A DNA stretch of 64,000 nt from Octopus sinensis (GCF_006345805.1 NC_043010.1:64294001-64358000); one strand, 5' to 3'. Numbered from the stretch's first letter, positions 34,728 through 63,490 are shown. Notes: generated by a model from the sequence alone, not told the origin. Numbers and translations are program-made.

Positions 34728-34862
34728 AGTGTTCTCCTGGAAAGTATGGTTCTGGCTGTAATGAGGAATGCAACTGTCGAGATAAGGACGTGTGCGACAG
34801 AGTCACTGGAATATGCCCACATGGATGTCCACCTGGTTTCACGTCAGGCACTTGTAAAGAAG
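34728..34862 (+). CDS. EGF-like exon B2
   Basis: ttttcAG acceptor, GTTAGT donor, 135 nt. Protein identical to B1 (one silent TGT/TGC change). Confidence 0.92.
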
Positions 34863-35681
34863 GTTAGTAACGTTTGCTTTCTGTTGTCATTGTGTATTGC
34901 AATTGTTGTTCTTTTTAGTTATGTATTCTGAGATGCTAATACAAGATATAGCAAAGATTACCAACAAGGGTGACAGTACTGTGTGTGACATGGAACAGTG
35001 TACTAACAATGTACTTGCTTTTTCAGCAAAATATAAAAACAAGGGAGACAACAAGATATACAAACTAGAGAAACAACAGCCTAAGCTAACAACATAACAA
35101 AGTATACTAACAAGGGGTACAGCAAGGGGTACATCACAGGGAACGGCAACTTGTGATGACAAGGGAAGTAATAACATGTATTGTCAACGTTGACTACATA
35201 GTATACTAACATGGGCGAAGAACGTGTGCTAACAGGGAAGATAACAAAGTATGCAAGAGTCGCACAGCGTGTACTAAGGAGGGAGATGGCAGAAGATTGT
35301 GTGCCTGAAGACATCTAACTAATTGCTTGAAATAGTCATCTGTCTTATACATTTTTAGATTTCTGTTGGTTAAAGTTTTTGACTTTACAAAGTTTTGGGT
35401 TGGTTGATTTATTAAGAAGCTAGTTTAGCTTGTTTAAGGTTTGATTTCGATGCAAAAAAAGTTTGGCAAATATCTTCTGTGAAAGTCCTGGTTTGATTCA
35501 AGACTTGTGAATGAAACAAACCATCTGGAAGCTTCAGGAAAACTCTGTGAAATTTGCAAGAGAATATGGTTCTGTCTTGAATTGGCGTTGACTATGATGC
35601 CAGTAATATTGTGTTACTGATATTTAAAAGGCAACAATAAATTTGTAAGTTAAAACGTGTTTCTTCTGTTATTTTTTTCAG

Positions 35682-35813
35682 TATGCCCTAAAGGCACATT
35701 TGGAGATAAATGTCATAAACAGTGTCATTGTAATGATGACAGTTGCAACCCAGCATATGGTCATTGTGCTCATGGATGTGTTGCTGGATATCGGGGTAAA
35801 AGCTGTCAAGAAT
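35682..35813 (+). CDS. EGF-like exon C2
   Basis: tttttttcAG acceptor, GTGAGT donor, 132 nt, phase 1-1. CPKGTFGDKCHKQCHCNDDSCNPAYGHCAHGCVAGYRGKSCQE (inside ORF 35657..35857). Confidence 0.92.
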
Positions 35814-36099
35814 GTGAGTATGAAACAACTGATTATACCATTGGAATTATGAAGTAATTTCAAAGTGAATATATTTAGTTCAAATCACTTATGGACGAAT
35901 TTTATGTTAGGACTTCACCTGCCAGAATTTATCTGGCCTTCTGTGATTGGCCTAGTGTAATTCTTTTCCTCATTTGACTGAAAATTACCCCGCCAACCTA
36001 CTCTCTTGAGGATTTTCTTTTCAAGTATATTTTTTGTTTCGCTTTCTAATTTGTCCTTGCGAAATCGACTCTTTTGTTGTTCCTGTAACAATAAAAGAT

Positions 36100-38790
36100 A
36101 TTATTTGACTTAGGTTCGTTCTTATTCTTGCTAGAATTTATGTGGGTAATGGGTTACTACCAGTAACTTTATATATCCTCAAGCTTTCGTTAATCTTTCA
36201 AGTGCTGAAAACCCTTCTGATAATTTTTCCTGTCCATAAGAGGCAAACTCTCTGTGGAAGCTCTTCAGGACATTCTATTCCAATCTCTCCCAACCATTCA
36301 TCTATATCCTTACTCCCAGATCCTAATGCACCAATTATTGCAGGAACAACCTTTACATATTTCATGCTCCAAAATCTCGCAAATGCAAATTTTAAAGGAT
36401 TGGATTTTAAAATGTTTTTCTTCTTTCTTAACAATCCTGGAATCGAACAGACACGATGGATCAATTAGTAAGCAACTTCGCCTTTCCTTGTCTATTATTG
36501 TTATATCTGGTTTATTGTTTCCTAGCTTCCTATCTGTTTGAATGGGAAAATCCCATAAAATCTTGCTTTCTCCGACTCAAGCACCCTCTCAACCCAATGG
36601 TGATACCAAGTACTTTGAGCTTCAAATCCCCATTTCTGATGAAGCGCCCAGTGAAAAACTTGCAATACTTGGTCATGTCTCCATTTCGTATATTCTGTAT
36701 GAGCCAACCTGGGATATTCTGCAACAATGTGCACCATTGTTTTATCTCAAATACCTCACACTTTACATTTTGCTGACACCTCCCCATACACATATTTTTT
36801 CAAATTATTTGTTTTTATTGCTTTATCTTCAGCTGTTTTAACAAGGCACTCTGTTTCTTTTTTTAAATGCCCTTTTGTTTTTAATGAAGCCCAGATTTTT
36901 GTTTCACGTACATCTTCAGTGGCTTTCAAATACTGACCATGCAGATTTTTTTTTCAATCTGTTTATAATGCTCTCTTTGAATATCATTTTCGTCTTTTCC
37001 TCCTATTTCCACATTTGACCACCTGCTCTCTATTCACTGCCTTTAGTATTTTCTGTGTGTTGTTCTATAGTAGCCTACTATATTTTAGCAGGCTTTGTCT
37101 GTGTTCTTTCAAGACCATACTTCTCATGCAATCTCTAGTGAACAAACTTAGCCCTGTTATCGTGCCTCTTTTTGTATTCCTTTTGGATTAGTTTGCTAAA
37201 TTCACTCACAATATGTGAGATTATTTCGTTTTTTTGATACCATAAACCCACAAAGGAGCGATTCATTGTTCTTGTCTATTTGGACCTTGGAGTAATTATT
37301 TCTCAGGGTTTGTTCCTGGGTACTACATATCAATGCCTATGTGCATCTCTGCTGTTCCACTGGCAGCTTGTCAGTTATTTTCAGCATGTCAAAAGCACAG
37401 TTAGTTACATTCCTGACATCAACTTCCAAATCAGTAGTAAGTAGGAGAATGGCCGGTAATTTTCCACTGCATTACATTTACTGGAGTCGTCTTTGGTAAA
37501 AAGCTATTTTCCCTGTGGTAATGCATTTTGGGATTTATACCCTGTTGTTGATCATTTTATCCATTTGCATATCTATTCTTTTGTATAATTCTGGGAAATT
37601 TTCCAGCCATTACCTTTGAACCCCATCCGGGCCAGGACACTTCCAGTTTGAAATCATTGTTGTCTTCTCGGTCACCATTTCAGTTGATATTCGTATACTG
37701 CTCTGTTCCATTTAAATTTTCTCGGATCTTAATTCCTTCAAGCATCTTTCTGATGATTTCTTCCATTATCTCAGATGTTACTCTAAAAACTCCTACTTTC
37801 TTCAGCGTTCGGTTTCTCATTGCTGCTAACCTCTCCATCTGCTGATAAACCATTTTCTGATCCGGCTGGAACAATATATTGATTTTATGTTGTTAAATTC
37901 TGTGGTCAGATCCCTTGATTTTTGTAGCTCTGCAGGGCTATATTCAATCCCTTTTTCGTGATACTAAACCTACGTTCTAGTTTTGATATTTCTCCATTTT
38001 GATTTACCTTGTTTCTTTCTTTTCAGAGTGTTGATATGCTTTCGTGATTCATTCATTGATTACATTATCCTTCTTTTCTTCCAAGGCTCTTTTGTCTCAT
38101 TTCCTCTTTTACGATTTGGTTTGAGGGTTACTTTTCTTCTTATATAGATGATACTAGTTTTAACCAATCTACCTGTAGCATTTATATTATCTTTCTTAGT
38201 TACTTTCAGTATTTTATTCATCTTCCGAGTCAACCCGCTGAGCAAAATTATACCACTTTCTTGAATTCATTTACTTCTATGTTCAAATTTTTCTGAATGA
38301 TACTAGTGATATCTTCAATCATTACTCTATCCTCGTCGCTCAATCCTTCGATATTCTCAAAACTTAAGCCAGCACCATTCTCCAGAGCAACTTCATTCAA
38401 TACAACTCGTCAACATTTTCTGTAACAATACAACTTCACTCACAGTGTTTTCGATCGTCCCCGTCTTCTTAATCTCATCAAACTCTAATGCTGTTAACCA
38501 TTCTTTCTTCCTTATTATCCTTGCTTGGTCATGTAGACTCTCTCTGAAATATCTAAGTTGAGCATCTCCATCCAAATGCCACGCATTCTCTTTCTGTATC
38601 CTTTTATAGGTTTCCCTTCATCATCAACAGGTCTGCTAAAAAAATAACATTCTATGGCAGCTATTTTCATCACCTTAGACCATTTTGTCTTGGCAACCAT
38701 ATAATGAAGACCGGGCCTGTGCTACTCACCCACAAGGCAAGAGCCCGTCACCTGAAGTTTCGTCCACATTTAAGCCGTTGTTTGTATTAA
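36100..38790 (-). mobile_element. Decayed, internally deleted R4/Dong-clade element (third family)
   Basis: N-terminal IAAIECYFFSRPVDDEGKPIKGYRKRM, MFQPDQKMVYQQ, KWRHDQV (RHD) and C-terminal VVPAIIGALGS. RT core not seen. Confidence 0.8.
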
Positions 38791-39169
38791 TACTTTTATC
38801 CGTTACTCTCATAAAAAGGAAAGTGATTTAACAACCACCAGTATTTTCATTCGAGACACTTTCTCTAGAGGGTTTGTATCAAAAAAATCATCGGGGCCTC
38901 TCTACCCTTTAAAAGTTTAAGTAAGCAATCTTGCATTGTACACCAACCCAGTACTCTGAGCGGTAATGATCTAATCGGATGCACAACTAATGAAAAGTTG
39001 CTGTGTAGGTGACCGCTGACTCCCCTGAGTTCATCTACTCTTCAACAGGCCTTGTATTTCATCCTGAAGGGTTAGCAAATAGAAAGAAAAATACACTCTC
39101 CACAGAGCAGGTTCTGTGGAGTTGCTGGTTTAGTCGCCAACGATTCGACACTTGTGATTCAGTTGAGAT

Positions 39170-39404
39170 AACAAAAACAACAACAACAATTATCTTTTCT
39201 AGTAAAGGCACAAGGCCTGAAGTTTTGGGGAGGGGACTAGTCGAATACATCGACCCCAGTGTTCCGCTGGTTCTTAATTTATCAACCCTGAAAGCAGGAA
39301 AGGCAAAGTCGATCTCGATGGAATTTGAACTCAGAATGTAACGATGGGTGAAATACTATTAAGCATTTCGTCCAATGTGCTAACGACTCTACCAGCTAGC
39401 CGCC
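39170..39404 (-). mobile_element. tRNA-derived SINE (copy 58905-59138)
   Basis: Reverse complement of the same SINE, GGCGGCTAGCTGGTAGAGTCGTTAGC...GAGTTCAAATTCC, with a (TTG)n tail. Confidence 0.75.
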
Positions 39405-40592
39405 TTAACAAAAATTCCCAGGAGTGAAAATGTCAAATATAAAAATATAAAACATTGGAATGAACAAGAATGACACTAAACACTGTACACGAGGGTAGAT
39501 GTGGACTATCGGAGCCTTGAGTAGCAACTCACCTAGTGATGGTGTCACAATAAAAATACTGGTGGTTGCACAATCTTACAAATGGTACTTCTAAATGAGT
39601 GATGTCAAAATTAAATAGTAACCACAACTGCACTAACAGGACTGGAAATGTAAAAGGTAAAGATGTCGCGCTCGGCAGGCAGGGAGTATCTGGTCAAGTT
39701 CTGGCAGATTGTCATCAAGCTATTGGTCAGGACCAAAGTCGCAGTCAAAAGTGCAAAGTAAAAAGAATGAAATGGGGGAAAAGAAGTAAACTAAATAGTA
39801 ATCGAATACTGGCTGAGAAGTGAGCCAAATAAAAGAGGCTTCATGAATCAAATGAAGAGAATATGGGATGAAGAAAGGAGGCTTTGAAGCATCCGCCCTG
39901 TGACTGATAGACTAAATAAGAGTAATATGTGGGGACGACTGGGTTATGGCAGTAGAGATTGAAGAAATTCAGAGAAACATAATAATAAATTAGCAGAAGG
40001 AGAGTGAAACAACGGTAGCAGAGAGCGGTAATGAAAGGGTAAAACAGGAAGAATATGAAACGGATGGAAGTATTGACACAAAAAAAAGCCAAATTAATAA
40101 AAAAAATGATGATAAATGCAAAGGTTTCGAATAGCATAGACTGTTCCAATAAAATAGAAGGCATCTATATGAGGAAACAGAGGGACGCCAACACTAAGAA
40201 CTGACTTGAGATGCGGAAGAAAGTAAAGAATTTGGAGGAAGACTGTAGAAAAAGCCGGCGAGATATAAAGAAAGTGCGGAGTGGCTAACAAAAGTAGAAA
40301 GGGTGTTTTGTTCAACATCCTTAAACAACCTTTATTCAGAGACCTTTTGAGTGGGATGTGTTACTCGACCAGAAGAAAATTCTAACTGTGCCCCACCTGC
40401 AAGGTAATGCGCTGTTTATCTTGATATGAGATCACCATGTTGCGCACATATAGTTGTGATGTATGTGCCTGGTGTACCTTTATCAGACGGGTAGTCATGA
40501 TGAGTATACTGGGCTTCGTATATTTTACCCCAGTGTCACTTTGATGGCATGCACTGCTCTCTCACTCAATAATAATAATAATAATAATAATA

Positions 40593-41098
40593 ATGAAAAT
40601 TGACAGGAAAATCCACAAGCTTCTGACTTGTAATAAGATGCACCATCCAAAGGCAGACGTGGATCGCCTTTACCTTCCCAGAGCTCAGGGAGGTCGAGGT
40701 TTGATCCAGCTTGAACTTACATACAAAACCACAACAATTGGACTGGCCAAATACCTTGAAGCAACCAACGATTGGATGCTAAAACTTGTTGAAAAACATG
40801 AAAGGCCTAAAAAAATTCATTCTATTCTCAAAGAGAGCAAAAAATTCGCTGCTGATCTCTTAGATACCCACCAGATTGAGCAGGCTGAAGGAAATGCACC
40901 AACTACAGCTGTAATTAAATAAAATTAATTGCAAAGACAAAAGCACATGAAAATTTAGCTAGCAGATGGGAACAGAAACCTTTCCATGGCAAGTATGTGG
41001 CCCGTAGCAAACAAGCTGATATCGACCAGAAACACACGCACCAATGGTTACGAAGTTCAGGGCTAAAAGCAGAGAGTGAAGGTTTCATATTAGCTGCT
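40593..41098 (+). mobile_element. R4/Dong fragment, 3'-deleted
   Basis: ORF 40593..40922 KMHHPKADVDRLYLPRAQGGRGLIQLE. Joined directly to the next R4 copy at tagctgct|tagcgattgg. Confidence 0.85.
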
Positions 41099-43117
41099 TA
41101 GCGATTGGAAACTTCCCATGTCCTGATTGATGGTACATCTAGTGATGGGGTCACAATAAAAATACTGGTAATTGTGCAATCTGATAATCGCTATCTCATA
41201 TGAGTGACGATGAAAAATATTGTGAATAATGGTAGTAATGAAACTGAAATCCATGATTGTGACAGCGTTGCACCTGGCAGGCTCACAGCTACTGGTCCGA
41301 CTCCCGCCTGTCGTTATCCAGCAAGGGATCCGACCACACAGATTAGATGGAACTAACAAATCAATGCTGTGGTCATGGAATGTTACTACCTGAGCAACCC
41401 TAACCCTGTAGACGAAAATATTGTTCATATATTAGGGGATACCGACAACTTATGTATGATCAAGGAAGAGAGAGAGGATAGTTTCAATACACAGAACAGA
41501 GATTATGTGATCAAGATAGAGAAATAAGAAAAAAATCGTTGGTTCCTGGAAGTATAGCTCGAAGCTATCAAAAGACGGGTATTGGGAAACAGCAGTAGAG
41601 GAAACGATGAAAATGCTGTTCTTACCGATAAAAGTAATCTCATAGTAGAAAGCAGAGGTGAGATCTCTAATAAACCACAGGAAAGGAACAGTGATAACTT
41701 GCTCGATGAGAGACATGAAATTCTGAAATACACGAGAACAAAAAAACATTACAGAAACAAAAAATTTGATCAAGGCAGCAAGTATTGCTGTAGCAGAAAA
41801 TATAGATGATGATGTCAAGAAAAAGATATATAATGGGAGTGACAAAAGAAAAAAAATCCATGGTAGAAAAAAAGAATACAGGTGGGGTTAAATATGCTCC
41901 CGAAAGTCATTACTGGTGAAACCGAAAAGAGAAGAGGTTACTTAAAAACGAATAAAAATACATGACACCGAACAGGAAGTATGATACTGAAAGAAAGGGC
42001 CTAAAAGTGGTAATAGAAGAACTGAAACAGCACTTCGTTGCAAAGAAAGCAAAGATGGTAAGATACGACCAAAGAATGAAGGGTTACCACCAGCATGTGT
42101 TATTCAGAGTAGATCAGAAGAGATTCTATAAAGGAATAAATGGAGAATGTACAGATGAAAAGTTGATACCAGATAACAATGAAAGTCAAAGATGTTCGAG
42201 TCACATCTGGAGCAAAGATAAGGAGCACGAAAAGGATGCTGAATGGTTATGGTTGCAAGAACTGAAACAAACAGTAGTCTGTCCAAAACAGACAGGACTA
42301 GTCATTTCAGTTCGGAAAGTGAAGGAAAGAAGCAAAAAAAAAAAAAAGGAGCAACTAGAAGGCCCCGGGATCAGATAGAGTTCAAGGCTACTGGATCAAA
42401 TGATTTGGTGAATGTCATGCACGAATAGCTGCACAAATCAACACCTTGTTAAATGCCGACCAAGTAACACCAGAGTGGTTGACATTGGGTAGGACAGTGC
42501 TGTGCTTGAAAAACATCGAAAAAGGCAATATGGTACACAACTACTGGCCAATATCTTGTTTGCCACTTATGTGGAAACTATTAACTGGAATACTTGCAGA
42601 GTCAATGTACGAACATCTGGAAAAAAATTTGGAGTCCTGCCACATGAGCAGAAGGGTTTCAAGCATAAGTGCAGAGGTTACAAGGATCAACTCCTGATAG
42701 ACAAAACTGTTCTTAGAGACTGTAAGAGGAAGAAATGTAACTTAGCCATGTCATGGATCGACTATTGTAAGGCGTACGATATGATCCTACATTCTTGAAT
42801 TATGGAATGTATGAACCTATTTGGTATTGCATCGAATGTTGGAAAAAGTATGGTGAATTGGAGGACGGACCTGGCAGCATACGAAAGAAGTTTAGGGAAA
42901 GTAGAAATCAGAAAGGCTTCTTCCAAGAGGACTGCCTGTCTCCATTGATCTTTGTACTGTGCTTGATTTCACTAACACTGATTCTCAGGAAAGCAAAAGC
43001 TGGGTATGTATTCAAAAGCCACCAACAAATAGTCAACCACTTGTTATTCATGGATGACCTCAAACTTTATGGTAAAGATGAAGCCCAAGTCAGTTCCCTC
43101 GTTGATACGATGTACTA
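41099..43117 (+). mobile_element. Decayed R4/Dong-clade element (N-terminal region + RT)
   Basis: Paralog of 17729-19756 with the same RT motifs. Confidence 0.85.
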
Positions 43118-43583
43118 GCAAGTTGAGCGATTGCTGAGAGATTTGGCTTTCTTATTTGTTTGTATATCATTGCTTTTGTTGTTGCTGATGATGTTATTTG
43201 CATTTGGGTAAACTCAGATCGAGAAGACAGTCCCATGTTATTCAACCACTACTACTGCTGTTGTTTATATTCTGATGAATCCTGACTGATTAGAAAGATC
43301 TACGGTTATAGATATTCCACCCGTGGCCATCTTAAGAGATATTTAGGTCTCCATTGTTTAATGTTTCTTGTTTGTAGTCTAACAGGGTATTGTTTGAGGA
43401 AGATTTGGTCGCTGTTACTAGCAGATCAATCGAAAATATTGAGGCGCCGTAGTTGGTTAAACGATTTCCTATTATGGTTGTCTTGTTCATCAGTCATTGC
43501 TTGGTTTGTTTCCATCTTTTCATTTATGAAACGAGTTCTTTACTGTTTTACGCAATATAAAATATAATACGTTTGTTTCACAG

Positions 43584-43718
43584 TCTGCCAAGGAGGCACA
43601 TATGGACTACGTTGCACCAAAAGATGTAACTGTATGAATAATGACGCCTGCAACCCGATTCATGGCGCATGTCCTAGCGGCTGTGCAATGGGACGCATGG
43701 GTTCCGACTGTCAGCAAA
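43584..43718 (+). CDS. EGF-like exon A3
   Basis: tttcacAG acceptor, GTAAGT donor, 135 nt. CQGGTYGLRCTKRCNCMNNDACNPIHGACPSGCAMGRMGSDCQQ. Confidence 0.92.
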
Positions 43719-44398
43719 GTAAGTATACGTCTATACTAATAATCAAACTATTTCCCCACAACTCACACACATGATCTGTTCTTAACTTTAATTAAGTGGG
43801 ATACAAGTGCATAAACTCATTAAAAATTGTTTTCTATTTGATATTGAGATGTCTTACTTAAAATTTTGATTGTTATAATCTTACTTTAACAATGTCTATC
43901 TCACCTATATACATGTATTGTATATATACATGTATTGTACGTACATGTATTAATTAATTCAAGTTTTCGTACTCTCTACAAGAGCATAAGTATAGAAATA
44001 CTTATTTTGCTAAGTATTGAATTATGTTGAACTAGCACTATGAGCCGGCAACGCCGGGTCATAGTGCTAGTGCATGCATATACAGCTGCGTGCGTGCACA
44101 CATACACGCGAATACTGTCCAAATCTCCGACCAATCACATACAGCTAGCTGGCATTCAATTGGCGTATCAAGTTTCAGGCATTTTGATTGGGTTTTGGAA
44201 AGAAAATTCACAAAAAAGTCACATCTATTGATTTTTTAATGGCTTTACAGGGTGACTGGCAAAATGTAAAGATGTGCTCGACCACCCTTGGACGGTTTTG
44301 AATGACCATAGAAAGTGCGAGCCCTCTAACTGAAAAATTGTGGATACGTATAAAGGACACACACGCAGACATTTTGCCGTTTATATATATAGAGCTTA

Positions 44399-45871
44399 CT
44401 AGCAGTATCGCCCGGCGTTGCTCGGGTTTGTAAAGGAAATAACTATATATGCATTTTTAGAGAGTTATAGCCCAAAAGTAGCAAAAAAATGCATTAAAAA
44501 TGGAAAAAAAATTAAGGTAAATTTTTTTTTTTTAATTCGTAGACACATCGTAGATATTTTTAGAGAGTTACTTCCCTTATATAATAGCGAAAAAAATGCA
44601 TTAAAATGGAAAAATATGATGGTAAATTTTTTTAAAATCGTAGACTCATCGTAGACGCGCGCTAATACCCAGAAGGGCTCGATATGACTCACGACTTTAA
44701 GATACCCGCTTTTGGTGAAACTGCACCGCAAAATGTGGGAGTAGTTACGAATCTAAATTGTAGGAGACAGACACACAACTTCAGTTTCATATATAAATAA
44801 AAATATAAGCCACGTAGTTATATACACATACTTTGTTATATACACATTCTTAAAAGAAAATGTTATTTTGAACACAACATTTATAAAGAATAAAATATTT
44901 TTTGGTTTTTCTTAACCCTTTCGTTACTATATTTCTGACCAAAATACACCCCTTATGTGTTTCAATTATTTTCTAACGTAATCATAAATTTAGTCTGGTT
45001 TCATTAAACAACAATAACTTTTTTATTTATCAATATATTAACATGAATTTTGGAAGATAATTTAATGAAATGTTCTCAACCAATTTTATACTATAATTTT
45101 TGTCACAAAGGTAGATACAGGTAAATTCAACAATATATAAAATTATTAAAATTTTGTTCAAACATCGCTATAGAAAATGGGTTATTAGCTAATATTCAAT
45201 TGGGTATACAACAAAATTTTACGATAGAATTTGTTATTCTGGGTAACTTTCTGATACCCATAATAATATTTATGGCAAAATAGGCCTTAATTTCATTTAA
45301 GGTTATGGGAAATAACAAACTATCCTTTCTTTCGCTTTGTTTACGTTTAGCGTAACAGTTCGTTTCCGCCGTAATGATTTCAAATAGGCTCATTCGAAAA
45401 AGTAAAAGGAAATAGTCTAAGGCTTTACTCTTCTGGGAAAGTCTGTGGCTTGGTCCAGTTTCTTCAGAAAAATCACCGAAAGAAACAGTTTTTAAATTTT
45501 CACTCCATTCAGGTGCCAATTCATTTTCTTTATCGCTGTCGGATTCACTGTTTTCACTTTAATCGTTGCACACTTGCAAAGAGAAAGGAGTAATTAGGGT
45601 GATAGCGTCAGTGAAACAGTTCGCTCCGTTTGTGTGTGTGTGCGTGTGCTGTAGCCCACACTAAGAAAAGCATTTGACATACACACCACAATGTGAGTTT
45701 TCTCTAAATTTTGCTTAATTGGGGTTGAAATTTTAAAAACTGGACCTGGCACGACCCGATGCATTTTACTCTTAAAAATGCTAGGTAAATTGTAATTGAA
45801 GAAATCCTATATTGTAGATTTCTATAAGAGACAAAGGGAGGCAGATAAAATCTGCCTTTTATAATAAGAGA
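44399..45871 (-). mobile_element. Non-autonomous Helitron, single copy
   Basis: Same termini. Sits between A and T; empty site at 5341/5342. Confidence 0.87.
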
Positions 45872-46274
45872 TTAAGGAAAACTGAGGGAAGTAAATGTGA
45901 ACAACAGACATGTTTAACATCCTAGAATTTGTGGAAGTAACACCCACACAGGTAAAGTTACCTCTCCGTATCTAATGCACTCAGTACATGAATATCTTAA
46001 TGATGATAAAGATGATCATGTTGTTGTTGTTGTTGTTGTTCTGGTTCTTCTTCTACTTCTCCTCCTCCTCCTTCTTCTTCTTCTTGTTTACGTTCAAATT
46101 ACCCCCAAGTCGACTTTGCCTTTCATCCTTTCAGGGTCGATAAAGTAAGTAGTCGTTGAGTACTGAGGTCGATGAAATCAACTCATCACCGACCCCAAAC
46201 TTGCTGCCCTTGTTGCAAAATCATCATCATCGTAGTCATGATCATCATCATCATCATCATCATTATTATTATTA

Positions 46275-46309
<35 letters not shown>

Positions 46310-51600: not shown

Positions 51601-54540
51601 TGCTGCTGCTGCTGCTGCTGCTACTGCTACTGCTACTACTACTACTACTACTACTACTACGTTAACATTTTGTAGAATATGCTTCAAAGTTAATAATACC
51701 TGGGTTTTTTCTTACAAGAATACTATAGCTGTTGGAATTTATATTCTCACTCAATCTTAAAGTGCAAACACGACTATGAAGACATTAAAGATTCATTTTC
51801 AGCCGTAGGTTTCATACTTCGAAAAATTTGGGAGATATCAGTATCAGTCGATTAAACCAATTCCGGTATTGGTAAATTTTCTTTAATATTATTAATTCTG
51901 GAAGGATGAAAAGTGGAGTTAATGTCAGTTAACTTCAGATCCTAATGAAGAGTTAACTTCAGACGTAAATGGCCAAAGCTAAATACTGCAAGGATTTGCA
52001 ATACACTGCAACAATTCTTTCAATTTAGTATCTTTTTTCTATGTCTCATCAAAAGGAAACAAAAAGAAATCAACAAATTCATTATAAATCTAAATTTATT
52101 TCATGAGGTATCAAAATTTTCGTCACGCAGCTGTAAAATGGTTCTTGACATAGATCCACTGCAATGCTGAGTTAGTGACCAATTCGCTGTTGTGTGTCAA
52201 TATGTTTAACATCACGTCAAATTTTATGAGATTTAACGGTTTTGTGTGCTATTGATTAAATGGCTGTTCGACGAGGTAGTAGATTCAAGTTACTTTCTTG
52301 TACAACTAGGAAATATAAACAAATTAAACCAGAGGGATCTGTTTGGTACTGACTTCCTTATTAAGTAAATAGATTTAGTTATGAATGAGAAACGGATATT
52401 GATATTTTTATCAATATATTTCAATGTTTGAATTTATTAAAGATAAACGTACCTATTTTCTTACAAGAATACTATAGCTGTTGGAATTTATATTCTCACT
52501 CAATCTTAAAGTGCAAATACGACTATGAAGACATTAAAGATTCATTTTCAGCTGTAGATTTCATACTTCGAAAAATTTGGGAGATATCAGTATCAGTCGA
52601 TTAAACCAATTTTTCCTTTCATCCTTTTGGCGTCAAGAATATAGAACTAATCCAATATTTTTTTTCCTTCTTGAAAAAATCGGCTTTTAGTGGGAGATAC
52701 GATACACAAAGTTTAAAATGATGAAGATGTGCATGTATTAAATCTAGTCATATTTAATTAAATTTTCAAACAGAATCGAAACAAAAACAGCTACTTAACA
52801 CATCTTTATGAGATTTATACATACCTTATTTCTTCTTCAATCTATTTTTTTTTACATGTAATGCTAGTAAATAAAGGAAGTACTTTATATTAAGTACATT
52901 ATTTTGTCTTTTCTGCTTTAAAATATTGTATTATTGTCGTGGCACATCTAATTACACCTCGAGGTAAATCATTGTATTGCAACGCCCAGTTTGGGTATTA
53001 TTACAAGATTATTAAAATTCGTAAAATAGAGAAGTTCATATATAGTAAAGAAAAGTAAATTTAGACATCAGAGAAGGTCAGTTTCCGAAGAAATAAAATA
53101 CCTCTCCTAATTTCTCTGTCAAATTGGAGATAATGGATTAATCAACAAAGAGTTAATGACAGAGATTAGAAGATAGTTTAATCCGCCAAGTCTTTGGAAG
53201 AAAAGGATCGGATTTCTGAAGTCTGAGTGTCTGACTTGTAGAGCGGACAGTTTATAAGCAGACATATGCGATTTTGTTGAGTAGTACTTAACAGGGGCAA
53301 CTATTGGTATAGTAGTTACTCAAAATATATGTTTAGATAAGAGTAAAGATTTTAAAAATATTTAAGCCATGAAATATAAGAGAAATTCAGTATAGTTACC
53401 ACAAAGATCCAAACTCTACCCATTCCTTTTAATCTTAAACTGCACATAACTTCCAATAACAGATATGCATCACTATCATATGTTACTTTCATTCCTCATT
53501 CTAAGTTAGTCCTAAAAATGAAATCACTCCAAAGCTAACGAAGAACAAATTATGTTGGTACAGCAAAATCTAACCCTTACAATCTCTATAACTCCATTAG
53601 CAAACATTTGCATACACAACGCCTTCACAACTACTGCAATATCAATCTCTCATACTCCTTCAAACATATCTGTTACACAGCCCAACACTGCTACAACACC
53701 AAAGGACCACGAAAGAAATTTTGTAGGATTGATTGATTTGTTAAAAATAGCAGCCAAATGCCATTCAAATTGCATTCTCCATCTTAAAAAGATATTTTAC
53801 ACTTAAAACTAACAGTGAATGACGGAATACCTTAGATATCTGATCAAGGCTAACAGTGGTCAAAGCAACAACAATTTCAACACTACTCTGAAGAGAATAT
53901 CCGTCCAGGGAAACACACACACACAATCCTGACCTGCAAGAAATAGTAGCCAAATTTTCCTCAAATCACACACTACCCTCATATACAAAGAAAGAATAAA
54001 TAAGACAATTTAGCTATTCAGATACTGTATACATTCTCTGAAAATAATCTGGGTGGTCATTGTTTTGGGGCCAAACAACTCCAAGAACCACCTTAAACGC
54101 TCCCTAGATTTCACATTTGTCCTCGAGGAGTTCATCACTTGAACCGACAAGCATACAAAAATAGACTGGGCAAAAAAAGAAACACATGTCCCAACTGACA
54201 ATAATTCATATTCAGGATGTATTAGTGCGAAGGCCCACCAAGTGGTGAAGGCTTCGTATATCAAGTGTAATAGATCTGTGACTTGCACTTACTCTTTCGA
54301 TCAACTATTATAGATATGCTCATCGTATCTGATTTTAAAGTGAACTCCGCAAAAACAGAAACAGCATTTGATAAATGGCATCGTAAGGAAATCCTTCACA
54401 TAATTCTTTCGGTAGCTTTTAACTTGTCTCTTCTAATTCTTAATTCATGTAGTTGGTAAAGTGTATCTGATATTTTAAACTTTAACAGAGTCTGTGTAAC
54501 GTCAAATCTGGTGGATATTAAAAGAAATTGTTCTTTTCAG

Positions 54541-54675
54541 GGTGTCCTGAGGGATCGTATGGTTCTGGCTGTAAAGAGAGATGCACCTGTCCTTTTCGTT
54601 GGAATTGTGACAGAGTCAATGGAAAATGCCCCTATGGATGTCCAGCTGGTTACAAGGATGGCACTTGTAAAATAG
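54541..54675 (+). CDS. EGF-like exon B3
   Basis: ttcttttcAG acceptor, GTAAAA donor, 135 nt. CPEGSYGSGCKERCTCPFRWNCDRVNGKCPYGCPAGYKDGTCKI (inside ORF 54528..54911). Confidence 0.92.
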   Translation, partial: GVLRDRMVLAVKRDAPVLFVGIVTESMENAPMDVQLVTRMALVK

Positions 54676-55495
54676 GTAAAATAACGTTTGCTTTCTGTTG
54701 TCATTGTGTATTGCAATTGTTGCTCTTTTTAGTTATGTATTCTGAGATGCTAATACAAGATATAGCAAAGATTACCAACAAGGGTGACAGTACTGTGTGT
54801 GACATGGAACAGTGTACTAACAATGTACTTGCTTTTTCAACAAAATATAAAAAGAAGGGAGACAACAGGATATACAAACTAGAGAAACAACAGCCTAAGC
54901 TAACAACATAACAATGTATACTAACAAGGGGTACAGCAAGGGGTACATCACAGGGAACGGCAACTTGTGATGACAAGGGAAGTAATAACATGTATTGTCA
55001 ACGTTGACTGCATAGTATACTAACATGGGCGAAGAACGTGTGCTAACAGGGAAGATAACAAAGTATGCAAGAGTCGCACAGTGTGTACTAAGGAGGGAGA
55101 TGGCAGAAGATTGTGTGCCTGAAGACATCTAACTAATTGCTTGAAATAGTCGTCTGTCTTATACATTTTTAGATTTCTGTTGGTTAAAGTTTTTGACTTT
55201 ACAAAGTTTTGGGTTGGTTGATTTACTAAGAAGCTAGTTTAGCTTGTTTAAGGTTTGATTTCGATGCAAAAAAAGTTTGGCAAATATCTTCTGTGAAAGT
55301 CCTGGTTTGATTCAAGCCTTGTGAATGAAACAAACCATCTGGAAGCTTCAGGAAAACTCTGTGAAATTTGCAAAAGAATATGTTTCTGTCTTCAGTTGGT
55401 GTCAACTATGATACCAGTAATATTATGTTACTGATATTTAAAAGGCAACAATAAATTCGTAAGTTAAAACGTGTTTCTTCTGGGTTTTTTTTCAG

Positions 55496-55627
55496 TATGC
55501 CCTAGAGGCACATATGGATATGACTGTAAGGACACCTGTCATTGTCGTTACAACGTATGCAACAAACAATATGGTACTTGTAAGTATGGATGTGCTGTTG
55601 GATATCGGGGTATAACCTGTCAAGCAT
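55496..55627 (+). CDS. EGF-like exon C3
   Basis: tttttttcAG acceptor, GTGAGT donor, 132 nt. CPRGTYGYDCKDTCHCRYNVCNKQYGTCKYGCAVGYRGITCQA. Confidence 0.92.
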
Positions 55628-55914
55628 GTGAGTATGAAACAACTGATTATACCATTGGAATTATGAAGTAATTTCAAAGTGAATATATTTAGTTCAAATC
55701 ACTTATGGACGAATTTTATGTTAGGACTTCACCTGACGGAATTTATCTGGCCTTCTGTGATTGGCCTAGTGTAATTCTTTTCCTCATTTGACTGAAAATT
55801 ACCCTGTCAACCTACTCTCTTTAGGATTTTCTTTTGAAGTATATTTTTTTGTTTCGCTTTCTAATTTGTCCTTGCGAAATCGACTCTTTTGTTGTTCCTG
55901 TAACAATAAAAGAT

Positions 55915-58525
55915 ATTATTTGACTCAGGTTCGTTCTTATTCTTGCTAGAATTTATGTGGGTAATAGGTTACTACCAGTAACTTTATATATCCTCAAGCT
56001 TTCGTTAATCTTTCAAGTGCTGAAAACCCTTCTGATAATCTTTCCTGTCCATAAGAGGCAAACTCTCTGTGGAAGCTCTTCAGGACATTCTATTCCAATC
56101 TCTTCCAACCATTCATCTATATCCTTACTCCCAGATCCTAATGCACCAATTATTGCAGACACAACCTTTACATATTTCATGCTCCAAATTCTCGCAATTT
56201 CAAATTTTAAAGGATTGGATTTTAAAATGTTTTTCTTCTTTCTTAACAATCCTGGAATCGAACGGACACGATGGATCAATTAGTAAGCAACTTCGCCTTT
56301 CCTTGTCTATTATTATTATATCTGGTTTATTATTTCCTAGCTTCTTATCTGTTTGAATGGGAAAATCCCATAAAATCTTGCTTTCTCCGACTCAAGCACC
56401 CTCTCAACCCAATGGTGATACCAAGTACTTTGAGCTTCAAATCCCCATTTCTGATGAAGCGCCCAGTGAAAAACTTGCAATACTTGGTCATGTCTCCATT
56501 TCGTATATTCTGTATGAGCCAACCTGGGATATTCTGCAACAATGTGCACCATTGTTTTATCTCAAATACCTCACACTTTACATTTTGCTGACACCTCCCC
56601 ATACACATATTTTTTCAAATTATTTGTTTTTATTGCTTTATCTTCAGCTGCTTTAACAAGGCATTCTGTTTCTTTTTTTAAATGCCCTTTTGTTTTTAAT
56701 GAAGCCCAGATTTTTGTTTCACGTACATCTTCAGTGGCTTTCAAATACTGACCATGCAGATTTTTTTTTCAATCTGTTTATAATGCTCTCTTTGAATATC
56801 ATTTTCGTCTTTTCCTCCTATTTCCACATTTGACCACCTGCTCTCTATTCACTGTCTTTAGTATTTTCTGTGTGTTGTTCTATAGTAGCCTACTATATTT
56901 TAGCAGGCTTTGTCTGTGTTCTTTCAAGACCATACTTCTCATGCAATCTCTAGTGAACAAACTTAGCCCTGTTATCGTGCCTCTTTTTGTATTCCTTTTG
57001 TATCAGTTTGCTAAATTCACTCACAATATGTGAGATTATTTCGTTTTTTTGATGCCATAAACCCACAAAGGAGCGATTCACTGTTCTTGTCTATTTGGAC
57101 CTTGGAGTAATTATTTCTCAGGGTTTGTTCCTGGGTACTACATATCAATGCCTATGTGCATCTCTGCTGTTCCACTGGCAGCTTGTCAGTTATTTTCAGC
57201 ATGTCATACGCACAGTTAGTTACATTCCTGACATCAAATTCCAAATCAGTAGTAAGTAGGAGAATGGCCGGTAATTTTCCACTGCATTACATTTACTGGA
57301 GTCCTTTTTGGTAAAGAGCTGCTTTCCCTGTGGAATTGCATTTTGGGATTTATACCTTGTTGTTGATCATTTTATCCATTTGCATATCTATTCTTTTGTA
57401 TAATTCTGGGAAATTTTCCAGCCATTACCTTTGAACCCCATCCGGGCCAGGACACTTCCAGTTTGAGATCATTGTTGTCTTCTCGGTCACCATTTCAGTT
57501 GATATTCGTATACTGCTCTGTTCCATTTAAATTTTCTCGGATCTTAATTCCTTCAAGCATCTTTCTGATGATTTCTTCCATTATCTCAGATGTTACTCTA
57601 AAAACTCCTACTTTCTTCAGCGTCCGGTTTCTCATTGCTGCTAACCTCTCCATCTGCTGATAAACCATTTTCTGATCCGGCTGGAACAATATATTGATTT
57701 TATGTTGTTAAATTCTGTGGTCAGATCCCTTGATTTTTGTAGCTCTGCAGGGCTATATTCAATCCCTTTTTCGTGATACTAAACCTACGTTCTAGTTTTG
57801 ATATTTCTCCGTTTTGATTTCACCTTGTTTCTTTCTTTTCAGAGTGTTGATATGCTTTTGTGATTCATTCATTGACTACATTATCCTTCTTTTCTTCCAA
57901 GGCTCTTTTGTCTCATTTCCTCTCTTACGATTTGGTTCGAGGGCTACTTTTCTTCTTATATAGATGATACTAGTTTTAACCAATCTATCTGTAGCATTTA
58001 TATTATCTTTCTTAGTTACTTTCAGTATTTTATTCATCTTCCGAGTCAACCCGCTGAGCAAAATTATACCACTTTCTTGAATTCATTTACTTCTATGTTC
58101 AAATTTTTCTGAATGATACTAGTGATATCTTCAATCATTACTGTATCCTCGTCGCTCAATCCTTCGATATTCTCAAAACTTAAGCCAGCACCATTCTCCA
58201 GAGCAACTTCATTCAATACAACTCGTCAACATTTTCTGTAACAATACAACTTCACTCACAGTGTTTTCAATCGTCTCCGTCTTCTTAATCTCATCAAACT
58301 CTAATGCTGTTAACCATTCTTTCTTCCTTATTATCCTTGCTTGGTCATGTAGACTCTCTCTGAAATATCATTCTAAAATAACATTCTATGGCAGCTATTT
58401 TCATCACCTTAGACCATTTTGTCTTGGCAACCATATAATGACGACCGGGCCTGTGCTACTCACCCACAAGGCAAGAGCCCGTCACCTGAAGTTTCGTCCA
58501 CATTTACGCTGTTGTTTGTATTAAT
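55915..58525 (-). mobile_element. Paralogous copy of the minus-strand R4/Dong element
   Basis: Near-identical ORF fragments (56013..56279, 56337..56552, 57495..57689). Confidence 0.8.
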
Positions 58526-60305
58526 ACTTTTATCCATTACTCTCATACAAAGGAAAGTGATTTAACAACCAGCAGTATTTTCATTCGAGACACTTTCTCT
58601 AGAGGGTTTGTATCAAAAAAATCATCGGGGCCTCTCTACCCTTTAAAAGTTTAAGTAAGCAATCTTGCATTGTACACCAACCCAGTACTCTGAGCGGTAA
58701 TGATCTAATCGGATGCACAACTAATGAAAAGTTGCTGTGTAGGTGACCGCTGACTCCCCTGAGTTCATCTACTCTTCAACAGGCCTTGTATTTCATCCTG
58801 AAGGGTTAGCAAATAGAAAGAAAAATACACTCTCCACAGAGCAGGTTCTGTGGAGTTGCTGGTTTAGTCGCCAACGATTCGACACTTGTGATTCAGTTGA
58901 GATAACAAAAACAACAACAACAATTATCTTTTCTAGTAAAGGCACAAGGCCTGAAGTTTTGGGGAGGGGACTAGTCGAATACATCGACCCCAGTGTTCCG
59001 CTGGTTCTTAATTTATCAACCCTGAAAGCAGGAAAGGCAAAGTCGATCTCGACGGAATTTGAACTCAGAATGTAACGATGGGTGAAATACTATTAAGCAT
59101 TTCGTCCAACGTGCTAACGACTCTACCAGCTAGCCGCCTTAACAAAAATTCCCAGGAGTGAAAATGTCAAATATAAAAATATAAAACATTGGAATGAACA
59201 AGAATGACACTAAACATTGTACACGAGGGTAGATGTGGACTATCGGAGCCTTGATTAGCAACTCACCTAGTGATGGTGTCACAATAAAAATACTGGTGGT
59301 TGCACAATCTTACAAATGGTACCTCTAAATGAGTGATGTCAAAATTAAATAATAACCACAACTGCACTAACAGGACTGGAACTGTAAACGGTAAAGATGT
59401 CGCGCTCGGCAGGCAGGGAGTATCTGGTCAAGTTCCGGCAGATTGTCATCAAGCTATTGGTCAGGACCAAAGTCGCAGTCAAAAGTGCAAAGTAAAAAGA
59501 ATGAAATGGGGGAAAAGAAGTAAACTAAATAGTAATCGAATACTGGCTGAGAAGTGAGCCAAATAAAAGAGGCTTCATGAATCAAATGAAGAGAATATGG
59601 GATGAAGAAAGGAGGCTTTGAAGCATCCGCCCTGTGACTGATAGACTAAATAAGAGTAATATGTGGGGACGACTGGGTTATGGCAGTAGAGATTGAAGAA
59701 ATTCAGAGAAACATAATAATAAATTAGCAGAAGGAGAGTGAAACAACGGTAGCAGAGAGCGGTAATGAAAGGGTAAAACAGGAAGAATATGAAACGGATG
59801 GAAGAATTGACACAAAAAAAAGCCAAATTAATAAAAAAAATGATGATAAATGCAAAGGTTTCGAATAGCATAGACTGTTCCAATAAAATAGAAGGCATCT
59901 ATATGAGGAAACAGAGGGACGCCAACACTAAGAACTGACTTGAGATGCGGAAGAAAGTAAAGAATTTGGAGGAAGACTGTAGAAAAAGCCGGCGAGATAT
60001 AAAGAAAGTGCGGAGTGGCTAACAAAACTAGAAAGGGTGTTTTGTTCAACATCCTTAAACAACCTTTATTCAGAGACCTTTTGAGCGGGATGGGTTACTC
60101 GACCAGTAGAAAATTCTAATTGTGCCCCACCTGCAAGGTCATGCGCTGTTTATCTTGATATGAGATCACCATGTTGCGCACATATAGTTGTGATGCATGT
60201 GCCTGGTGTACCCTTATCAGACGGGTAGTGATGTTGGGTATACTGGGCTTCGTATATTTTACCCCAGTGTCACTTTGATGGTATGCACTGCTCTCTCACT
60301 CAATA

Positions 60306-60354
<49 letters not shown>

Positions 60355-61074
60355 TGATAATAAAGTCAAAACTCATGTAGGACCAGAGAAAATATTAACA
60401 ATAGTAAAAAAAAGATAATAATAATATTAGTGATGATGATGATGATGATGATGATAATAATAAAGTCAAACTCATGTGGGACCAGAGAAAATATTAACAA
60501 TAGTAAAAAAAGGATAATAATAATGTTAGTAATAATAATAATAATAATAATAAATGCCGTGATGCAGTACCAGGCAGCTGCTCTCATGGCTTCTGATCTT
60601 AACTGATTGGAAGTGTTTTCATGTACATTGTTTTGTCTTGGTATAAAAGATGGGCTACAGCAAATATTCTGCTCAATACCACAGATTTGCTTGTCAGTTG
60701 TTTGACCTTAACCAGTTGAGCATGTCCCTTAGTGGCTGACGATATGTGCATCTCTGATCACGAGCAGAAGTAGTTGGGGAGCATCATAGCCATGTGTTGA
60801 GAGGGATTCTTTGGGGTTTGAATAATTCACCTCTGGAAACATGGGTGGTTCTTTCAACATACTTAAACAACCCTTATTCAGGGACCTTTTGAGCGGGATG
60901 GGCTACTCAACCTGAAGAAAATTCTAACTGGGCCCCACCTGCAAGGTCATGTGCTGTTTATCTTGATATGAGATCACCATGTCACGCATATATGGTTGTG
61001 ATGCATGTGCCTGGTGTACCCTTCGTATATTTTACCCCAGTGTCACTTTGATGGCATGCACTGCTCTCTCACTC

Positions 61075-61127
<53 letters not shown>

Positions 61128-61130
<3 letters not shown>

Positions 61131-62890
61131 AAATTTGACAGGAAAATCCGCAAGCTATTGACTTGTAATAAGATGCACCATCCAAAGGCAGATGTGGATC
61201 GTCTTTACCTTCCCAGAGCTCAGGGAGGTCGAGGTTTGATCCAGCTTGAACTTACATACAAAACGACCACAATCGGACTGGCCAAATACCTTGAAGCAAC
61301 CAACGATTGGATGCTAAGACTTGTTGAAAAACATGAAAGGCCTAAAAAACTTCACTCTATTCTCAAAGAGAGCAAAAAATTCGCTGCTGATCCCTTAGAT
61401 ACCCACCAGATTGAGCAGGGTGAAGGAAATGCACCAACTACAGCTGTAATTAAATAAAATTAATTGCAAAGACAAAAGCACATGAAAATTTAGCTAGCAG
61501 ATGGGAACAGAAACCTTTCCATGGCAAGTATGTGGCCCGTAGCAAACAAGCTGATGTCCACCAGAAACACACGCACCAATGGTTACGAAGTTCAGGGCTA
61601 AAAGCAGAGAGTGAAGGTTTCATATTGGCTGCTGAAGACCAAAGGTTTTTTACCCGGAACTACCAAGCCAATGTGATGAAAAATGGAGCTGACCCAAAAT
61701 GCCGATTCTGTAACGATGAGATTGAAACAATAGACCACCTAATCTCAGGGTGTAGAGTCTTAGCACCTGCAGAATATAAAGCAAGACATGACAGAGTCGG
61801 CCAGTATTTACACTGGACAATATGTCAGCATTACAAAATCAAAACCGCTGACGAATTGTATAAACATCATCCTGAAGCTGTGACTGAGGGAGAAAATGTG
61901 TTGATTCTATGGGTCTTCCCCATGCAGACCGACACGACTATAAAGGAATAAATGGAGAATGTACAGATGAAAAGTTGATACCAGATAACAATGAAAGTCA
62001 AAGATGTTCGAGTGACATCTGGAGCAAAGATAAGGAGCACGAAAAGGATGCTGAATGGTTATGGTTGCAAGAACTGAAACAAACAGTAGTCTGTCCAAAA
62101 CAGACAGGACTAGTCATTTTAGTTCGGAATCAGATGGAGTTCAAGGCTACTGGATCAAATGATTTGGTGAATGTCATGCACGAATAGCTGCACAAATCAA
62201 CACCTTGTTAAATGCCGACCAAGTAACACCAGAGTGGTTGACATTGGGTAGGACAGTGCTGTGCTTGAAAAACATTCGAAAAAGGCAATACGGTACACAA
62301 CTACTGGCCGATATCTTGTTTGCCACTTACGTGGAAATTATTAACTGGAATACTCGCAGAGTCAATGTACGAACATCTGGAAAAAAATTTGGAGTCCTGC
62401 CACATGAGCAGAAGGGTTGCTAGCGTAAGTGCAGAGGTACCAAGGATCAACTCCTGATAGACAAAACTGTTCTTAGAGACTGTAAGAGGAGGAAAAGTAA
62501 CTTAGCCATGTCACGGACCGACAATAGTAAGGCGTACGATATGATCCAACATTCTTGGATTATGGAATGTATGAACCTATTTGGTATTGCATCGAATGTT
62601 GAGCGATTGCTTGGAAAAAGTATGGTGAATTGGAGGACGGACCTGGCAGCATACGAAAGAAGTTTAGGGAAAGTAGAAATCAGAAAGGCATCTTCCAAGA
62701 GGACTGCCTGTCTCCATCGATCTTTGTACTGTGCTTGATTTCACTAACACTGATTCTCAGGAAAGCAAAAGCTGGGTATGTATTCAAAAGCCAGCAACAA
62801 ATAGTCAACCACTTGTTATTCATGGATGACCTCAAACTTTATGGTAAAGATGAAGCCCAAGTCAGTTCCCTCGTTGATACGATGTACTAG
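61128..62890 (+). mobile_element. Fused R4/Dong fragments (REL-side fragment joined to RT fragment)
   Basis: CRFCNDEIETIDHLISGC and RHD in ORF 61532..61951. Junction at ctataaa 61938-61944, then RT motifs to LLFMDDLKLY. Confidence 0.85.
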
Positions 62891-63355
62891 CAAGTTGAGC
62901 GATTGCTGAGAGATTTGGCTTTCTTATTTGTTTGTATATCATTGCTTTTGTTGTTGCTGATAATGTTATTTGCATTTGGGTAAACTCAGATCGAGAAGGC
63001 AGTCCCATGTTATTCAACCACTACTACTGCTGTTGTTTATATTCTGATGAATCCTGACTGATTAGAAAGATCTACGGTTATAGATATTCCACCCGTGGCC
63101 ATCTTAAGAGATATTTAGGTCTCCATTGTTTAATGTTTCTTGTTTGTAGTCTAACAGGGTATTGTTTGAGGAAGATTTGGTCGCTGTTACTAGCAGATCA
63201 ATCGAAAATATTGAGGCGCCGTAGTTGGTTAAACGATTTCCTATTATGGTTGTCTTGGTCATCAGTCATTCATTGATTTTTTGCCATCTTTTCAATTATG
63301 AAACGAGTTCTTTACTGTTTTACGCAATAAAAGGTATAATACGTTTGTTTCACAG

Positions 63356-63490
63356 TCTGCGCGAGAGGCGAGTATGGACAATATTGCACCAAAACATGTA
63401 GATGTTCTGGTTATGACAACTGCAACCCGATTTATGGCACATGTCCTAGAGGCTGTGCATCTGGATACAGGGGTTACGACTGTCAGCAAA
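63356..63490 (+). CDS. EGF-like exon A4
   Basis: tttcacAG acceptor, GTAAGT donor, 135 nt. CARGEYGQYCTKTCRCSGYDNCNPIYGTCPRGCASGYRGYDCQQ. Confidence 0.92.

Follow-up and report, generated by a model that had tools for sequence, protein, structure and literature searches.

Loop divergence between near-identical introns in tandemly amplified EGF-like exons of an octopus receptor gene

How can the exons of recent tandem copies differ at about a quarter of their bases, with half of the changed codons altered at two or three positions, if the introns around them and the silent sites within them have hardly moved? This question is raised by a stretch of 64,000 nucleotides from Octopus sinensis (CM016872.1:64,294,001-64,358,000; referred to as the window), which lies within the ectodomain-coding part of a receptor gene that encodes a fucolectin/F5-8C lectin followed by EGF repeats of the Tie2/SCARF/MEGF10 type. 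The original prediction for the interval 34728-63490, i.e., from the first base of exon B2 to the last base of exon A4, proposed three routes to the multiply changed codons: successive fixations that hit the same codons repeatedly, micro-conversion with divergent paralogous exons as donors, or a local mutagenic process. Our analysis suggests that episodic positive selection following an intragenic amplification, acting without a special mutation mechanism, is probably the correct explanation.

The window has a G+C content of ~38%, abundant retrotransposon open reading frames (ORFs) and long direct repeats. It contains ~3.3 units of ~20 kb of a tandem array with a period of 19-23 kb, and each unit carries up to three EGF-like exons of phase 1-1 with lengths of 135, 135 and 132 nt. 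A six-frame scan for cysteine patterns yielded nine short plus-strand exons, each bounded by AG and GT, which were assigned to the classes A, B and C following the labels of the original prediction. The whole array comprises at least six units, of which alpha, beta and gamma lie upstream of the window and units 1, 2 and 3 within it. For each exon class three types were found, with copies differing by 0-5 nt within a type and by 9-40 nt between types. Type I is represented by alpha, unit 2 and exon B1, type II by beta and unit 3, and type III by gamma and the exons A1 and A2. The exons of units 2 and 3, with changes polarized by the outgroup Octopus bimaculoides, are the following:

34728-34862, plus strand: exon B2, type I and near-ancestral, 135 nt, phase 1-1, with AG/GT splice sites.
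35682-35813, plus strand: exon C2, type I, 132 nt, phase 1-1.
43584-43718, plus strand: exon A3, type I.
54541-54675, plus strand: exon B3, type II, with 30 derived substitutions relative to the outgroup state.
55496-55627, plus strand: exon C3, type II, with 25 derived substitutions, identical to exon Cb of the upstream unit beta.
63356-63490, plus strand: exon A4, type II, with 13 derived substitutions.

Exon divergence between neighbouring units is 23-27%, whereas intron divergence over several kb amounts to 2.0-2.4% around B and C and to 2.5-4.4% around A. Identity of the flanking introns remains at 97-98% as far as the splice sites, where the exon substitutions end with sharp edges, and the substitution density is 7-12 times higher in exons than in introns (Fisher P = 1e-15 to 1e-25). 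Within the intron after exon B, the initial 7-8 nt also differ by type (GTTAGTAA at 34863-34870 and GTAAAATAA at 54676-54684, including a 1-nt indel), so the diverged patch extends slightly beyond the donor splice site. That silent sites barely move was borne out: in codons with unchanged amino acid, a comparison of types I and II gives 2 differences in 46.1 synonymous sites (4.3%, 95% confidence interval 0.5-15.7%). By the same statistic 54 of 65.8 synonymous sites (82%) differ among the old exon classes A, B and C, which argues that silent sites are not generally constrained, and between O. sinensis and O. bimaculoides 6 of 57.7 silent sites differ at an intron divergence of ~9%, so that silent sites can serve as a neutral clock. 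The pattern is not general to the family, since the duplicated EGF exons of a paralogue (locus L002) are no more diverged than their introns (8-13% vs 13-17%); in these, the proportions of non-synonymous (pN) and synonymous (pS) differences are about equal and multi-hit codons are few.

The recount of changed codons reproduced the predicted figures. C2 and C3 differ by 35 substitutions (11 transitions and 24 transversions, 13 of the latter A<->C) in 21 codons, 11 of which are changed at two or three positions. B2 and B3 differ by 37 substitutions (10 transitions, 27 transversions) in 21 codons, 19 of them non-synonymous and 10 multi-hit, and A3 and A4 by 31 substitutions (16 transitions, 15 transversions) in 18 codons, 9 of them multi-hit. 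The proposed fractions (C 11/21, B 10/19, A 9/18) are therefore recovered, with the 19 for B denoting replacement codons, the transition and transversion counts given for C2/C3 and A3/A4 agree exactly, and the example codons GAC>TGG, GTG>AAT, CAG>ACC and ATG>TCT were all found, ATG>TCT twice. Under a null model of uniformly mutable codons the 30 multi-hit codons exceed the expected 21.7 (P = 0.0017), and 12 triple hits compare with 2.2 expected. An invariant Cys/Gly/Tyr framework common to all exon classes occupies 13-17 of the 44 positions, and the positions that vary, which correspond among classes A, B and C, lie outside this framework. If it is excluded, which leaves 27-31 permissive codons, the 30 observed multi-hit codons stand against 28-31 expected (P = 0.3-0.75). 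As ~35 substitutions per exon fall into only ~27-31 permissive codons, every second changed codon is inevitably hit two or three times. The multi-hit share of 50% is thus not a separate anomaly but follows from the excess of non-synonymous change; the real oddity is that this excess is about tenfold over the neutral clock and is concentrated on one module type.

Selection was analyzed with our own three-taxon maximum-likelihood codon model, which covers 131 codons and uses site classes and optional rates for double hits (delta) and triple hits (psi). It assigns omega ~31 to 42% of the codons and is strongly preferred over a model with omega<=1 (2dlnL = 78.3, P = 9e-19), and omega is still ~2 at the upper bound of the silent-site divergence. 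The signal arises from ~100 replacements vs 2 silent changes and not from a handful of multi-hit codons. By this test these exons have been under positive, diversifying selection. The delta term gave a non-significant gain of 0.18 (P = 0.67), as did delta plus psi with a gain of 2.5 (P = 0.28 with two site classes, P = 0.25 with three), and with kappa fixed at an intron-like value of 4 the multi-hit terms reached P = 0.064. Multi-nucleotide mutations are debated as a confounder of tests for positive selection (bioRxiv 10.1101/165969; PMC6332903). The octopus exons pose the same question of single events versus repeated selection, and here the fit is not significantly improved by double- and triple-hit rates. 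Since the data fit a standard codon model that includes a positively selected class, repeated sequential fixation at the same codons is sufficient. Selection against identical neighbouring domains, i.e., avoidance of misfolding, was considered as a cause and is weak, because neighbours in the protein always differ in exon class.

The silent sites also bear on the proposed mutagenic process. A locally raised mutation rate of the exons, whether in the germline or through somatic hypermutation in the animal used for the assembly, would agree with the confinement of the substitutions to the exons, with their sharp edges at the splice sites and with a B/C spectrum unlike that of the introns. However, the silent sites interleaved with the changed ones remained at background (2 of 46 changed vs 100 of 347 remaining exon sites, P = 1e-4) and the framework codons are untouched. 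The derived changes of type II start from all four bases (25 from A, 21 from C, 12 from G and 10 from T), with no adenine or motif signature. Moreover, each type is present twice in the array as near-identical copies (Cb is identical to C3, and Bb and B3 differ by 2 nt), so these sequences were inherited. An exon-wide mutagenic process was hence rejected, and a locally raised exon mutation rate is regarded as very improbable. Somatic diversification is reported for the FREPs of snails. A mechanism resembling diversity-generating retroelements or hypermutation is not supported either, as the changes start from all four bases, no template copy was found in 258 kb and silent sites were spared; the reverse-transcriptase ORFs of the introns represent fragments of ordinary retrotransposons. 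An apparent footprint of RNA editing (10 A>G vs 0 T>C) was dismissed because T resides mostly in constrained Cys or Tyr codons or at silent positions.

When and in which copies the exons changed can be read from the outgroup. In O. bimaculoides the orthologue (protein P0021/P0272, locus L004) contains one B-C-A module, which occupies ~4.5-6 kb (L004 26473-30983), compared with ~9 kb for a module of O. sinensis. The introns of all O. sinensis units were expanded by the same transposon insertions in the same order, and these insertions are absent from O. bimaculoides; the amplification is therefore specific to the lineage, and whole 20 kb units were copied including their exons. The outgroup places 68 derived changes in type II (B 30, C 25, A 13) and 22 in type I, with 13 ambiguous, so that type II carries 68 of the 90 polarized changes. 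On the type II stem 7 of 779 sites of the B-C intron changed vs 55 of 267 sites of the two flanking exons, a more than 20-fold difference. The order type I to type II is found twice, and each type has its own transposon-derived marker in the C-A intron, which indicates that a two-unit block was re-duplicated. Exon change after this event was roughly as fast as intron change, with 8 singleton changes in 267 nt over four lineages. The intron features concerned are the following:

34863-35681, plus strand: B-C intron of unit 2, where 11 of 16 intron sites linked to exon type are located.
39481-40353, no strand assigned: patch of ~0.9 kb in the C-A intron with its unit 3 partner at 59215-60087, a conversion-like tract.
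41246-41920, no strand assigned: transposon-derived segment of ~0.67 kb of type I units.
61641-61927: unrelated retrotransposon-derived segment of 0.29 kb of type II units, at the place of the 41246-41920 segment of type I.

From these data the following course of events may be proposed. A segment of ~6 kb with the B, C and A exons would have acquired transposon insertions in the O. sinensis/O. vulgaris lineage and would then have multiplied in tandem, so that a single unit became at least six, each of ~20 kb. Once the first copies existed, the loop codons, i.e., those outside the framework, of some modules would have been driven through successive replacements by diversifying selection. Type II would have changed most and the A exons of type I would have changed too, while the Cys/Gly framework, the silent sites and the introns would have stayed at a neutral 2-4%. 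Later the block of one type I and one type II unit would have been re-duplicated, with exon evolution at about the neutral rate thereafter, and gene conversion among the units would have partly scrambled the genealogy of the introns.

The introns are indeed reticulate. The 28 informative intron sites of the region around B and C fall 16, 8 and 4 across the three possible groupings, and 12 of the 28 conflict with the exon grouping. Type-linked sites make up 1.34% of the B-C intron vs 0.16% of other intron sequence (P = 6e-5). In the C-A intron 15 sites favour the grouping of neighbouring units (alpha with beta, unit 2 with unit 3), 11 of them within the patch of ~0.9 kb, which looks like a gene-conversion tract. 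The tandem units thus undergo concerted evolution. In the tandem repeats of abalone VERL evolution is likewise mostly concerted, with particular repeats diverged by positive selection, but there whole repeats are homogenized. In MHC class I and II genes introns are homogenized and exons diversified, with intron genealogies younger than, or decoupled from, the selected exon. The MHC diversity, however, is allelic and old, whereas in the octopus the silent sites within the exons are young as well.

The reticulation raises the alternative that the exon types are well older than 2-3% and that only the introns were rejuvenated by conversion, which would have been blocked at the mismatch-dense exons or selected against there. 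Ordinary diversifying selection over a longer time would then suffice. Consistent with this, the distances among introns form an almost star-like pattern that does not follow exon type, the conflicting sites and the ~0.9 kb patch unite units across types, the type-linked sites are concentrated in the 821-nt intron between two diverged exons, and the confidence interval of the silent divergence extends to 15.7%, above the 9% divergence of the species. However, kb-scale transposon insertions shared in the same order by all units and absent from O. bimaculoides are unlikely to have been copied by conversion, and the outgroup has a single module. The type I branch is far shorter than the outgroup branch (5 vs 14 changes for B, 8 vs 11 for C), types I and II share both silent changes that separate their fully conserved codons from the outgroup, and the exon-adjacent intron upstream of B has no gradient of divergence. 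Together with an omega of ~2 even at the upper silent bound, this makes older exons in younger introns a rather unlikely explanation.

Short block replacement is the alternative that most directly concerns the multi-hit codons. According to it, single events that rewrote 2-15 adjacent nt contributed a real share of the differences, and selection only filtered them. Candidates are multi-nucleotide mutations, templated micro-events and micro-conversion from one unit to its neighbour. Such events would resemble the accelerated segment switch in exons (ASSET) described for snake three-finger toxins and other venom genes (PMC2474615, PMC2711939). Several observations weigh against stepwise selection alone, and most of them favour such events. 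Triple hits remain in excess among the permissive codons (12 vs 4.4-5.9, P<=0.003). In the loop of B3 formed by codons 17-21, 13 of 15 nt were changed amid similar introns with no intermediate in any copy, and several multi-hit codons include third-position changes that the new amino acid did not need (AAG>CGT, and ATG>TCT twice). The spectrum of the B and C exons is rich in transversions (21 transitions to 51 transversions, vs 60 to 28 in introns, P = 1e-6), the fitted kappa is 1.3 in exons vs ~4 in introns, and the multi-hit terms come near significance if kappa is held at 4. Recent changes lie close together: the only difference between Ba and B2 is ACT CAC vs TCT GGC, 3 nt within 5, the other 130 nt being identical, and Ca and C2 differ by CAT vs ACT. 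Among the variable exon sites 7 of 117 are homoplasious, including the 2-nt change CAT>ACT common to Ca and type II; the ACT state lies within a 13-nt identical stretch. Furthermore, selection alone implies an extreme rate of ~20 times neutral across the exons on the type II stem, followed by a near-neutral rate after the re-duplication, the intron clock is imperfect because conversion occurs, the type II exons are known from one assembly, and the exons are known here from genomic sequence and predicted gene models.

On the other side, the likelihood-ratio tests for double and triple hits were not significant, the triple hits can be explained by rate variation among codons, and half of the changed codons are single-hit and scattered over all loops. 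Apart from the B3 loop, most changes are scattered and fit stepwise substitution. Type III is intermediate at 4 sites in B and at 9 in C, and three-way runs tests for mosaicism were not significant (P = 0.47, 0.053 and 0.53). A search for type-specific 11-mers in other EGF exons, carried out in 258 kb (the window, the locus L001 directly upstream and L002), found no donor tract and gave chance-level matches outside exons only, and local 9-mer templates within 4 kb on either side were not above chance; the sole match of these searches inside another exon was a conserved GTYG stretch. A relation of the B3 loop to a shifted frame or the reverse complement of the B2 loop was checked by eye and not seen. 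Micro-conversion from divergent paralogous exons, the second route of the original prediction, is disfavoured, since an old paralogue as donor would import silent differences and almost none are present (4% vs 82%). Tiny patches common to neighbouring units (CAT>ACT, TCT GGC) do exist, and together with the triple-hit excess they leave room for short block replacement, which may have contributed. As the source of a real share of the differences we consider it unlikely, although it is the most probable of the rival explanations. In summary, the original interpretation is supported in part: sequential fixation under strong selection suffices, and the other two routes are unnecessary and partly refuted. 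As far as our own codon model and the search of 258 kb can show, a standard model of positive selection accounts for the counts and donors are absent, which is what the original prediction named as its refutation.

A more far-reaching version would be a germline process of this octopus that rewrites blocks of 2-15 nt in the EGF loops of duplicated exons and spares silent sites and introns. It would account for the type II burst, the triple-hit excess and the transversion-rich spectrum, and would be a counterpart outside venoms of the 'segment switch' in toxin genes. Such a process appears improbable.

The remaining exons of the window belong to the upstream part of the array:

4519-4651, plus strand: exon A1, type III, with two 1-nt deletions relative to A2, a pseudo-exon or assembly error.
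15590-15724, plus strand: exon B1, type I, with one silent CpG change relative to B2.
20223-20357, plus strand: exon A2, type III.

Beyond its two deletions, which may be errors of the assembly, A1 is one silent base apart from A2. To bridge A1, the public gene model P0002 uses a transposon-derived ORF (8908-9192) and is therefore spurious at this exon. Unit 1 has no exon C, because ~5 kb are deleted at 16204 (corresponding to 35342-40408 of unit 2), and its B exon is of type I but its A exon of type III. This hybrid unit probably originated from unequal exchange. The A1 deletions, the fragmentation of the gene models and the single assembly behind the type II exons could be taken as signs of an artefact, in which haplotypes or paralogous loci were mis-stitched into one array. 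However, the order type I to type II occurs twice with distinct surrounding differences, with the exception of A1 no exon is interrupted and none has lost a cysteine, the type I versions of B and C recur in the O. vulgaris protein P0003, and mis-joining would leave the contrast between exon and intron divergence unchanged. An assembly artefact as the cause of the pattern is therefore hardly credible. The introns of the array further contain an intact reverse-transcriptase ORF of 587 aa (RVT_1; 30182-31945, minus strand) with a truncated copy one unit upstream (10892-11887, minus strand), and recurring fragments of a piggyBac-like transposase (DDE_Tnp_1_7; 21727-22050, 23213-23536 and 45196-45519, minus strand). 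An Rfam scan of the window gave no matches.

Which protein is affected was deduced from gene models and domain searches. The spliced exons retrieved two O. sinensis gene models on the same chromosome of 68.4 Mb and one O. vulgaris model, P0003. P0002 reproduces the exons of the window, which starts at position 13530 of locus L003. P0001 at L001 encodes the domains F5_F8_type_C and F5_F8_type_C_2 (fucolectin-like), one EGF repeat and then two B-C-A modules. All copies retain eight cysteines and the Gly/Tyr framework and represent EGF repeats of the MEGF10/PEAR1/SCARF/Tie2 type, as defined by eight Cys in ~43-45 residues, the pattern C-x2-G-x-[YF]-G-x2-C-x3-C-x-C...G-x-C-x2-G-C-x2-G and similarity to members. 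Matches found with phmmer include PEAR1, MEGF10/11, Draper and SCARF. Pfam scores are low, with 22.8 bits for EGF_laminin in P0002 (cut-off 21) and 15.3 bits for the concatenated exons. Among solved folds the B-C-A module aligns most closely to the three EGF domains of Tie2 (residues 189-319, E=9e-10) and to SCARF1 (E=5e-5). The module is a member of the repeat family of MEGF10, PEAR1 and Draper, but the similarity to Tie2 and SCARF1 is distant and concerns mainly framework residues, and ligand contacts are not transferable. A search for short proteins with the type II module returned no matches.

Relatives in molluscs combine a lectin domain with EGF repeats of the MEGF10/PEAR1/SCARF type and a transmembrane segment, and tyrosine phosphatase domains often come after it. 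The octopus gene shares the lectin feature of this family of lectin-EGF receptor tyrosine phosphatases, as F5/8 type C domains are encoded upstream in the same gene, while the window itself contains neither a transmembrane segment nor a phosphatase domain. The orthologue of O. bimaculoides has the lectin layout of P0001, and after its B-C-A module come a further EGF repeat and a transmembrane segment. The adjacent downstream gene model encodes a Y_phosphatase domain and may be part of the same gene split by annotation. The O. sinensis paralogue L002, located 410 kb away, has a model of 1575 aa that includes Y_phosphatase. Judged from these sequences, the gene probably encodes a receptor tyrosine phosphatase with a predicted phosphatase tail further downstream. 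All exons are presumably spliced into one receptor, and the putative selective agent would be the recognition of ligands or pathogens. In the same family, the receptor phosphatase P0125 of the chiton Liolophura sinensis (1661 aa) has ~25 near-identical EGF repeats that differ by blocks of three residues (NSQ, QWE, DRE), and in the oyster Saccostrea cucullata the P0134 cluster comprises at least 24 annotated isoforms with lengths stepping by ~50 aa, which suggests that EGF exons are used there as cassette exons.

Accelerated evolution of disulfide-rich proteins with conserved introns is already known, and the octopus pattern agrees with it. As in ASSET, the octopus copies are recent with conserved introns, and segments of surface-loop exons are radically different with the framework cysteines kept. 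ASSET has been described without a demonstrated mechanism (PMC2474615, PMC2711939). In contrast to the separate toxin genes of ASSET, the octopus exons encode repeated domains of one receptor gene, and their changes are a mixture of scattered single hits and a few near-complete loop rewrites for which a single-hit codon model fits. Among molluscs, the mature regions of conotoxins are hypervariable with a position-specific conservation of cysteine codons (PMC3823881). In the octopus exons the loops between the cysteines likewise change extremely fast and each Cys keeps its own TGT or TGC codon across copies, but the protein is a receptor ectodomain repeat and not a secreted toxin, and the identity of the Cys codons is due to recent common ancestry, because all silent sites are conserved (~4%). 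The same architecture is found in Biomphalaria, with single-pass receptors of galactose-binding/fucolectin and MEGF10/SREC-type EGF domains, some with two phosphatase domains (LG5R, SudRes1; PMC13712769). They cluster under association peaks for schistosome resistance and are candidate pathogen-recognition receptors (PMC13712769). The octopus gene shares the lectin and the MEGF-type EGF repeats of this layout and is predicted to share the transmembrane segment, with or without a tyrosine phosphatase. The snail loci, however, are polymorphic gene clusters, whereas in the octopus exon modules were amplified within one gene with a putative immune role.

What is new is the setting, with domain exons amplified inside a single cephalopod receptor gene and an outgroup that fixes the direction of change. 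The array is a clean natural experiment, as copies of 20 kb have introns and silent sites that are 97-98% identical and yet differ in a quarter of their exon bases. If the triple hits, the loop rewrites and the 2-nt patches originated from single events, the locus would be a tractable system for the exon 'segment switch'; if not, it would be a benchmark for multi-hit codons produced by strong selection alone. For the biology of the receptor, the array illustrates the speed at which a disulfide-framed recognition surface can be remodelled after intragenic amplification, and it adds a cephalopod case to the mollusc family of lectin, MEGF-EGF and phosphatase receptors that has been proposed as pathogen-recognition machinery in snails.

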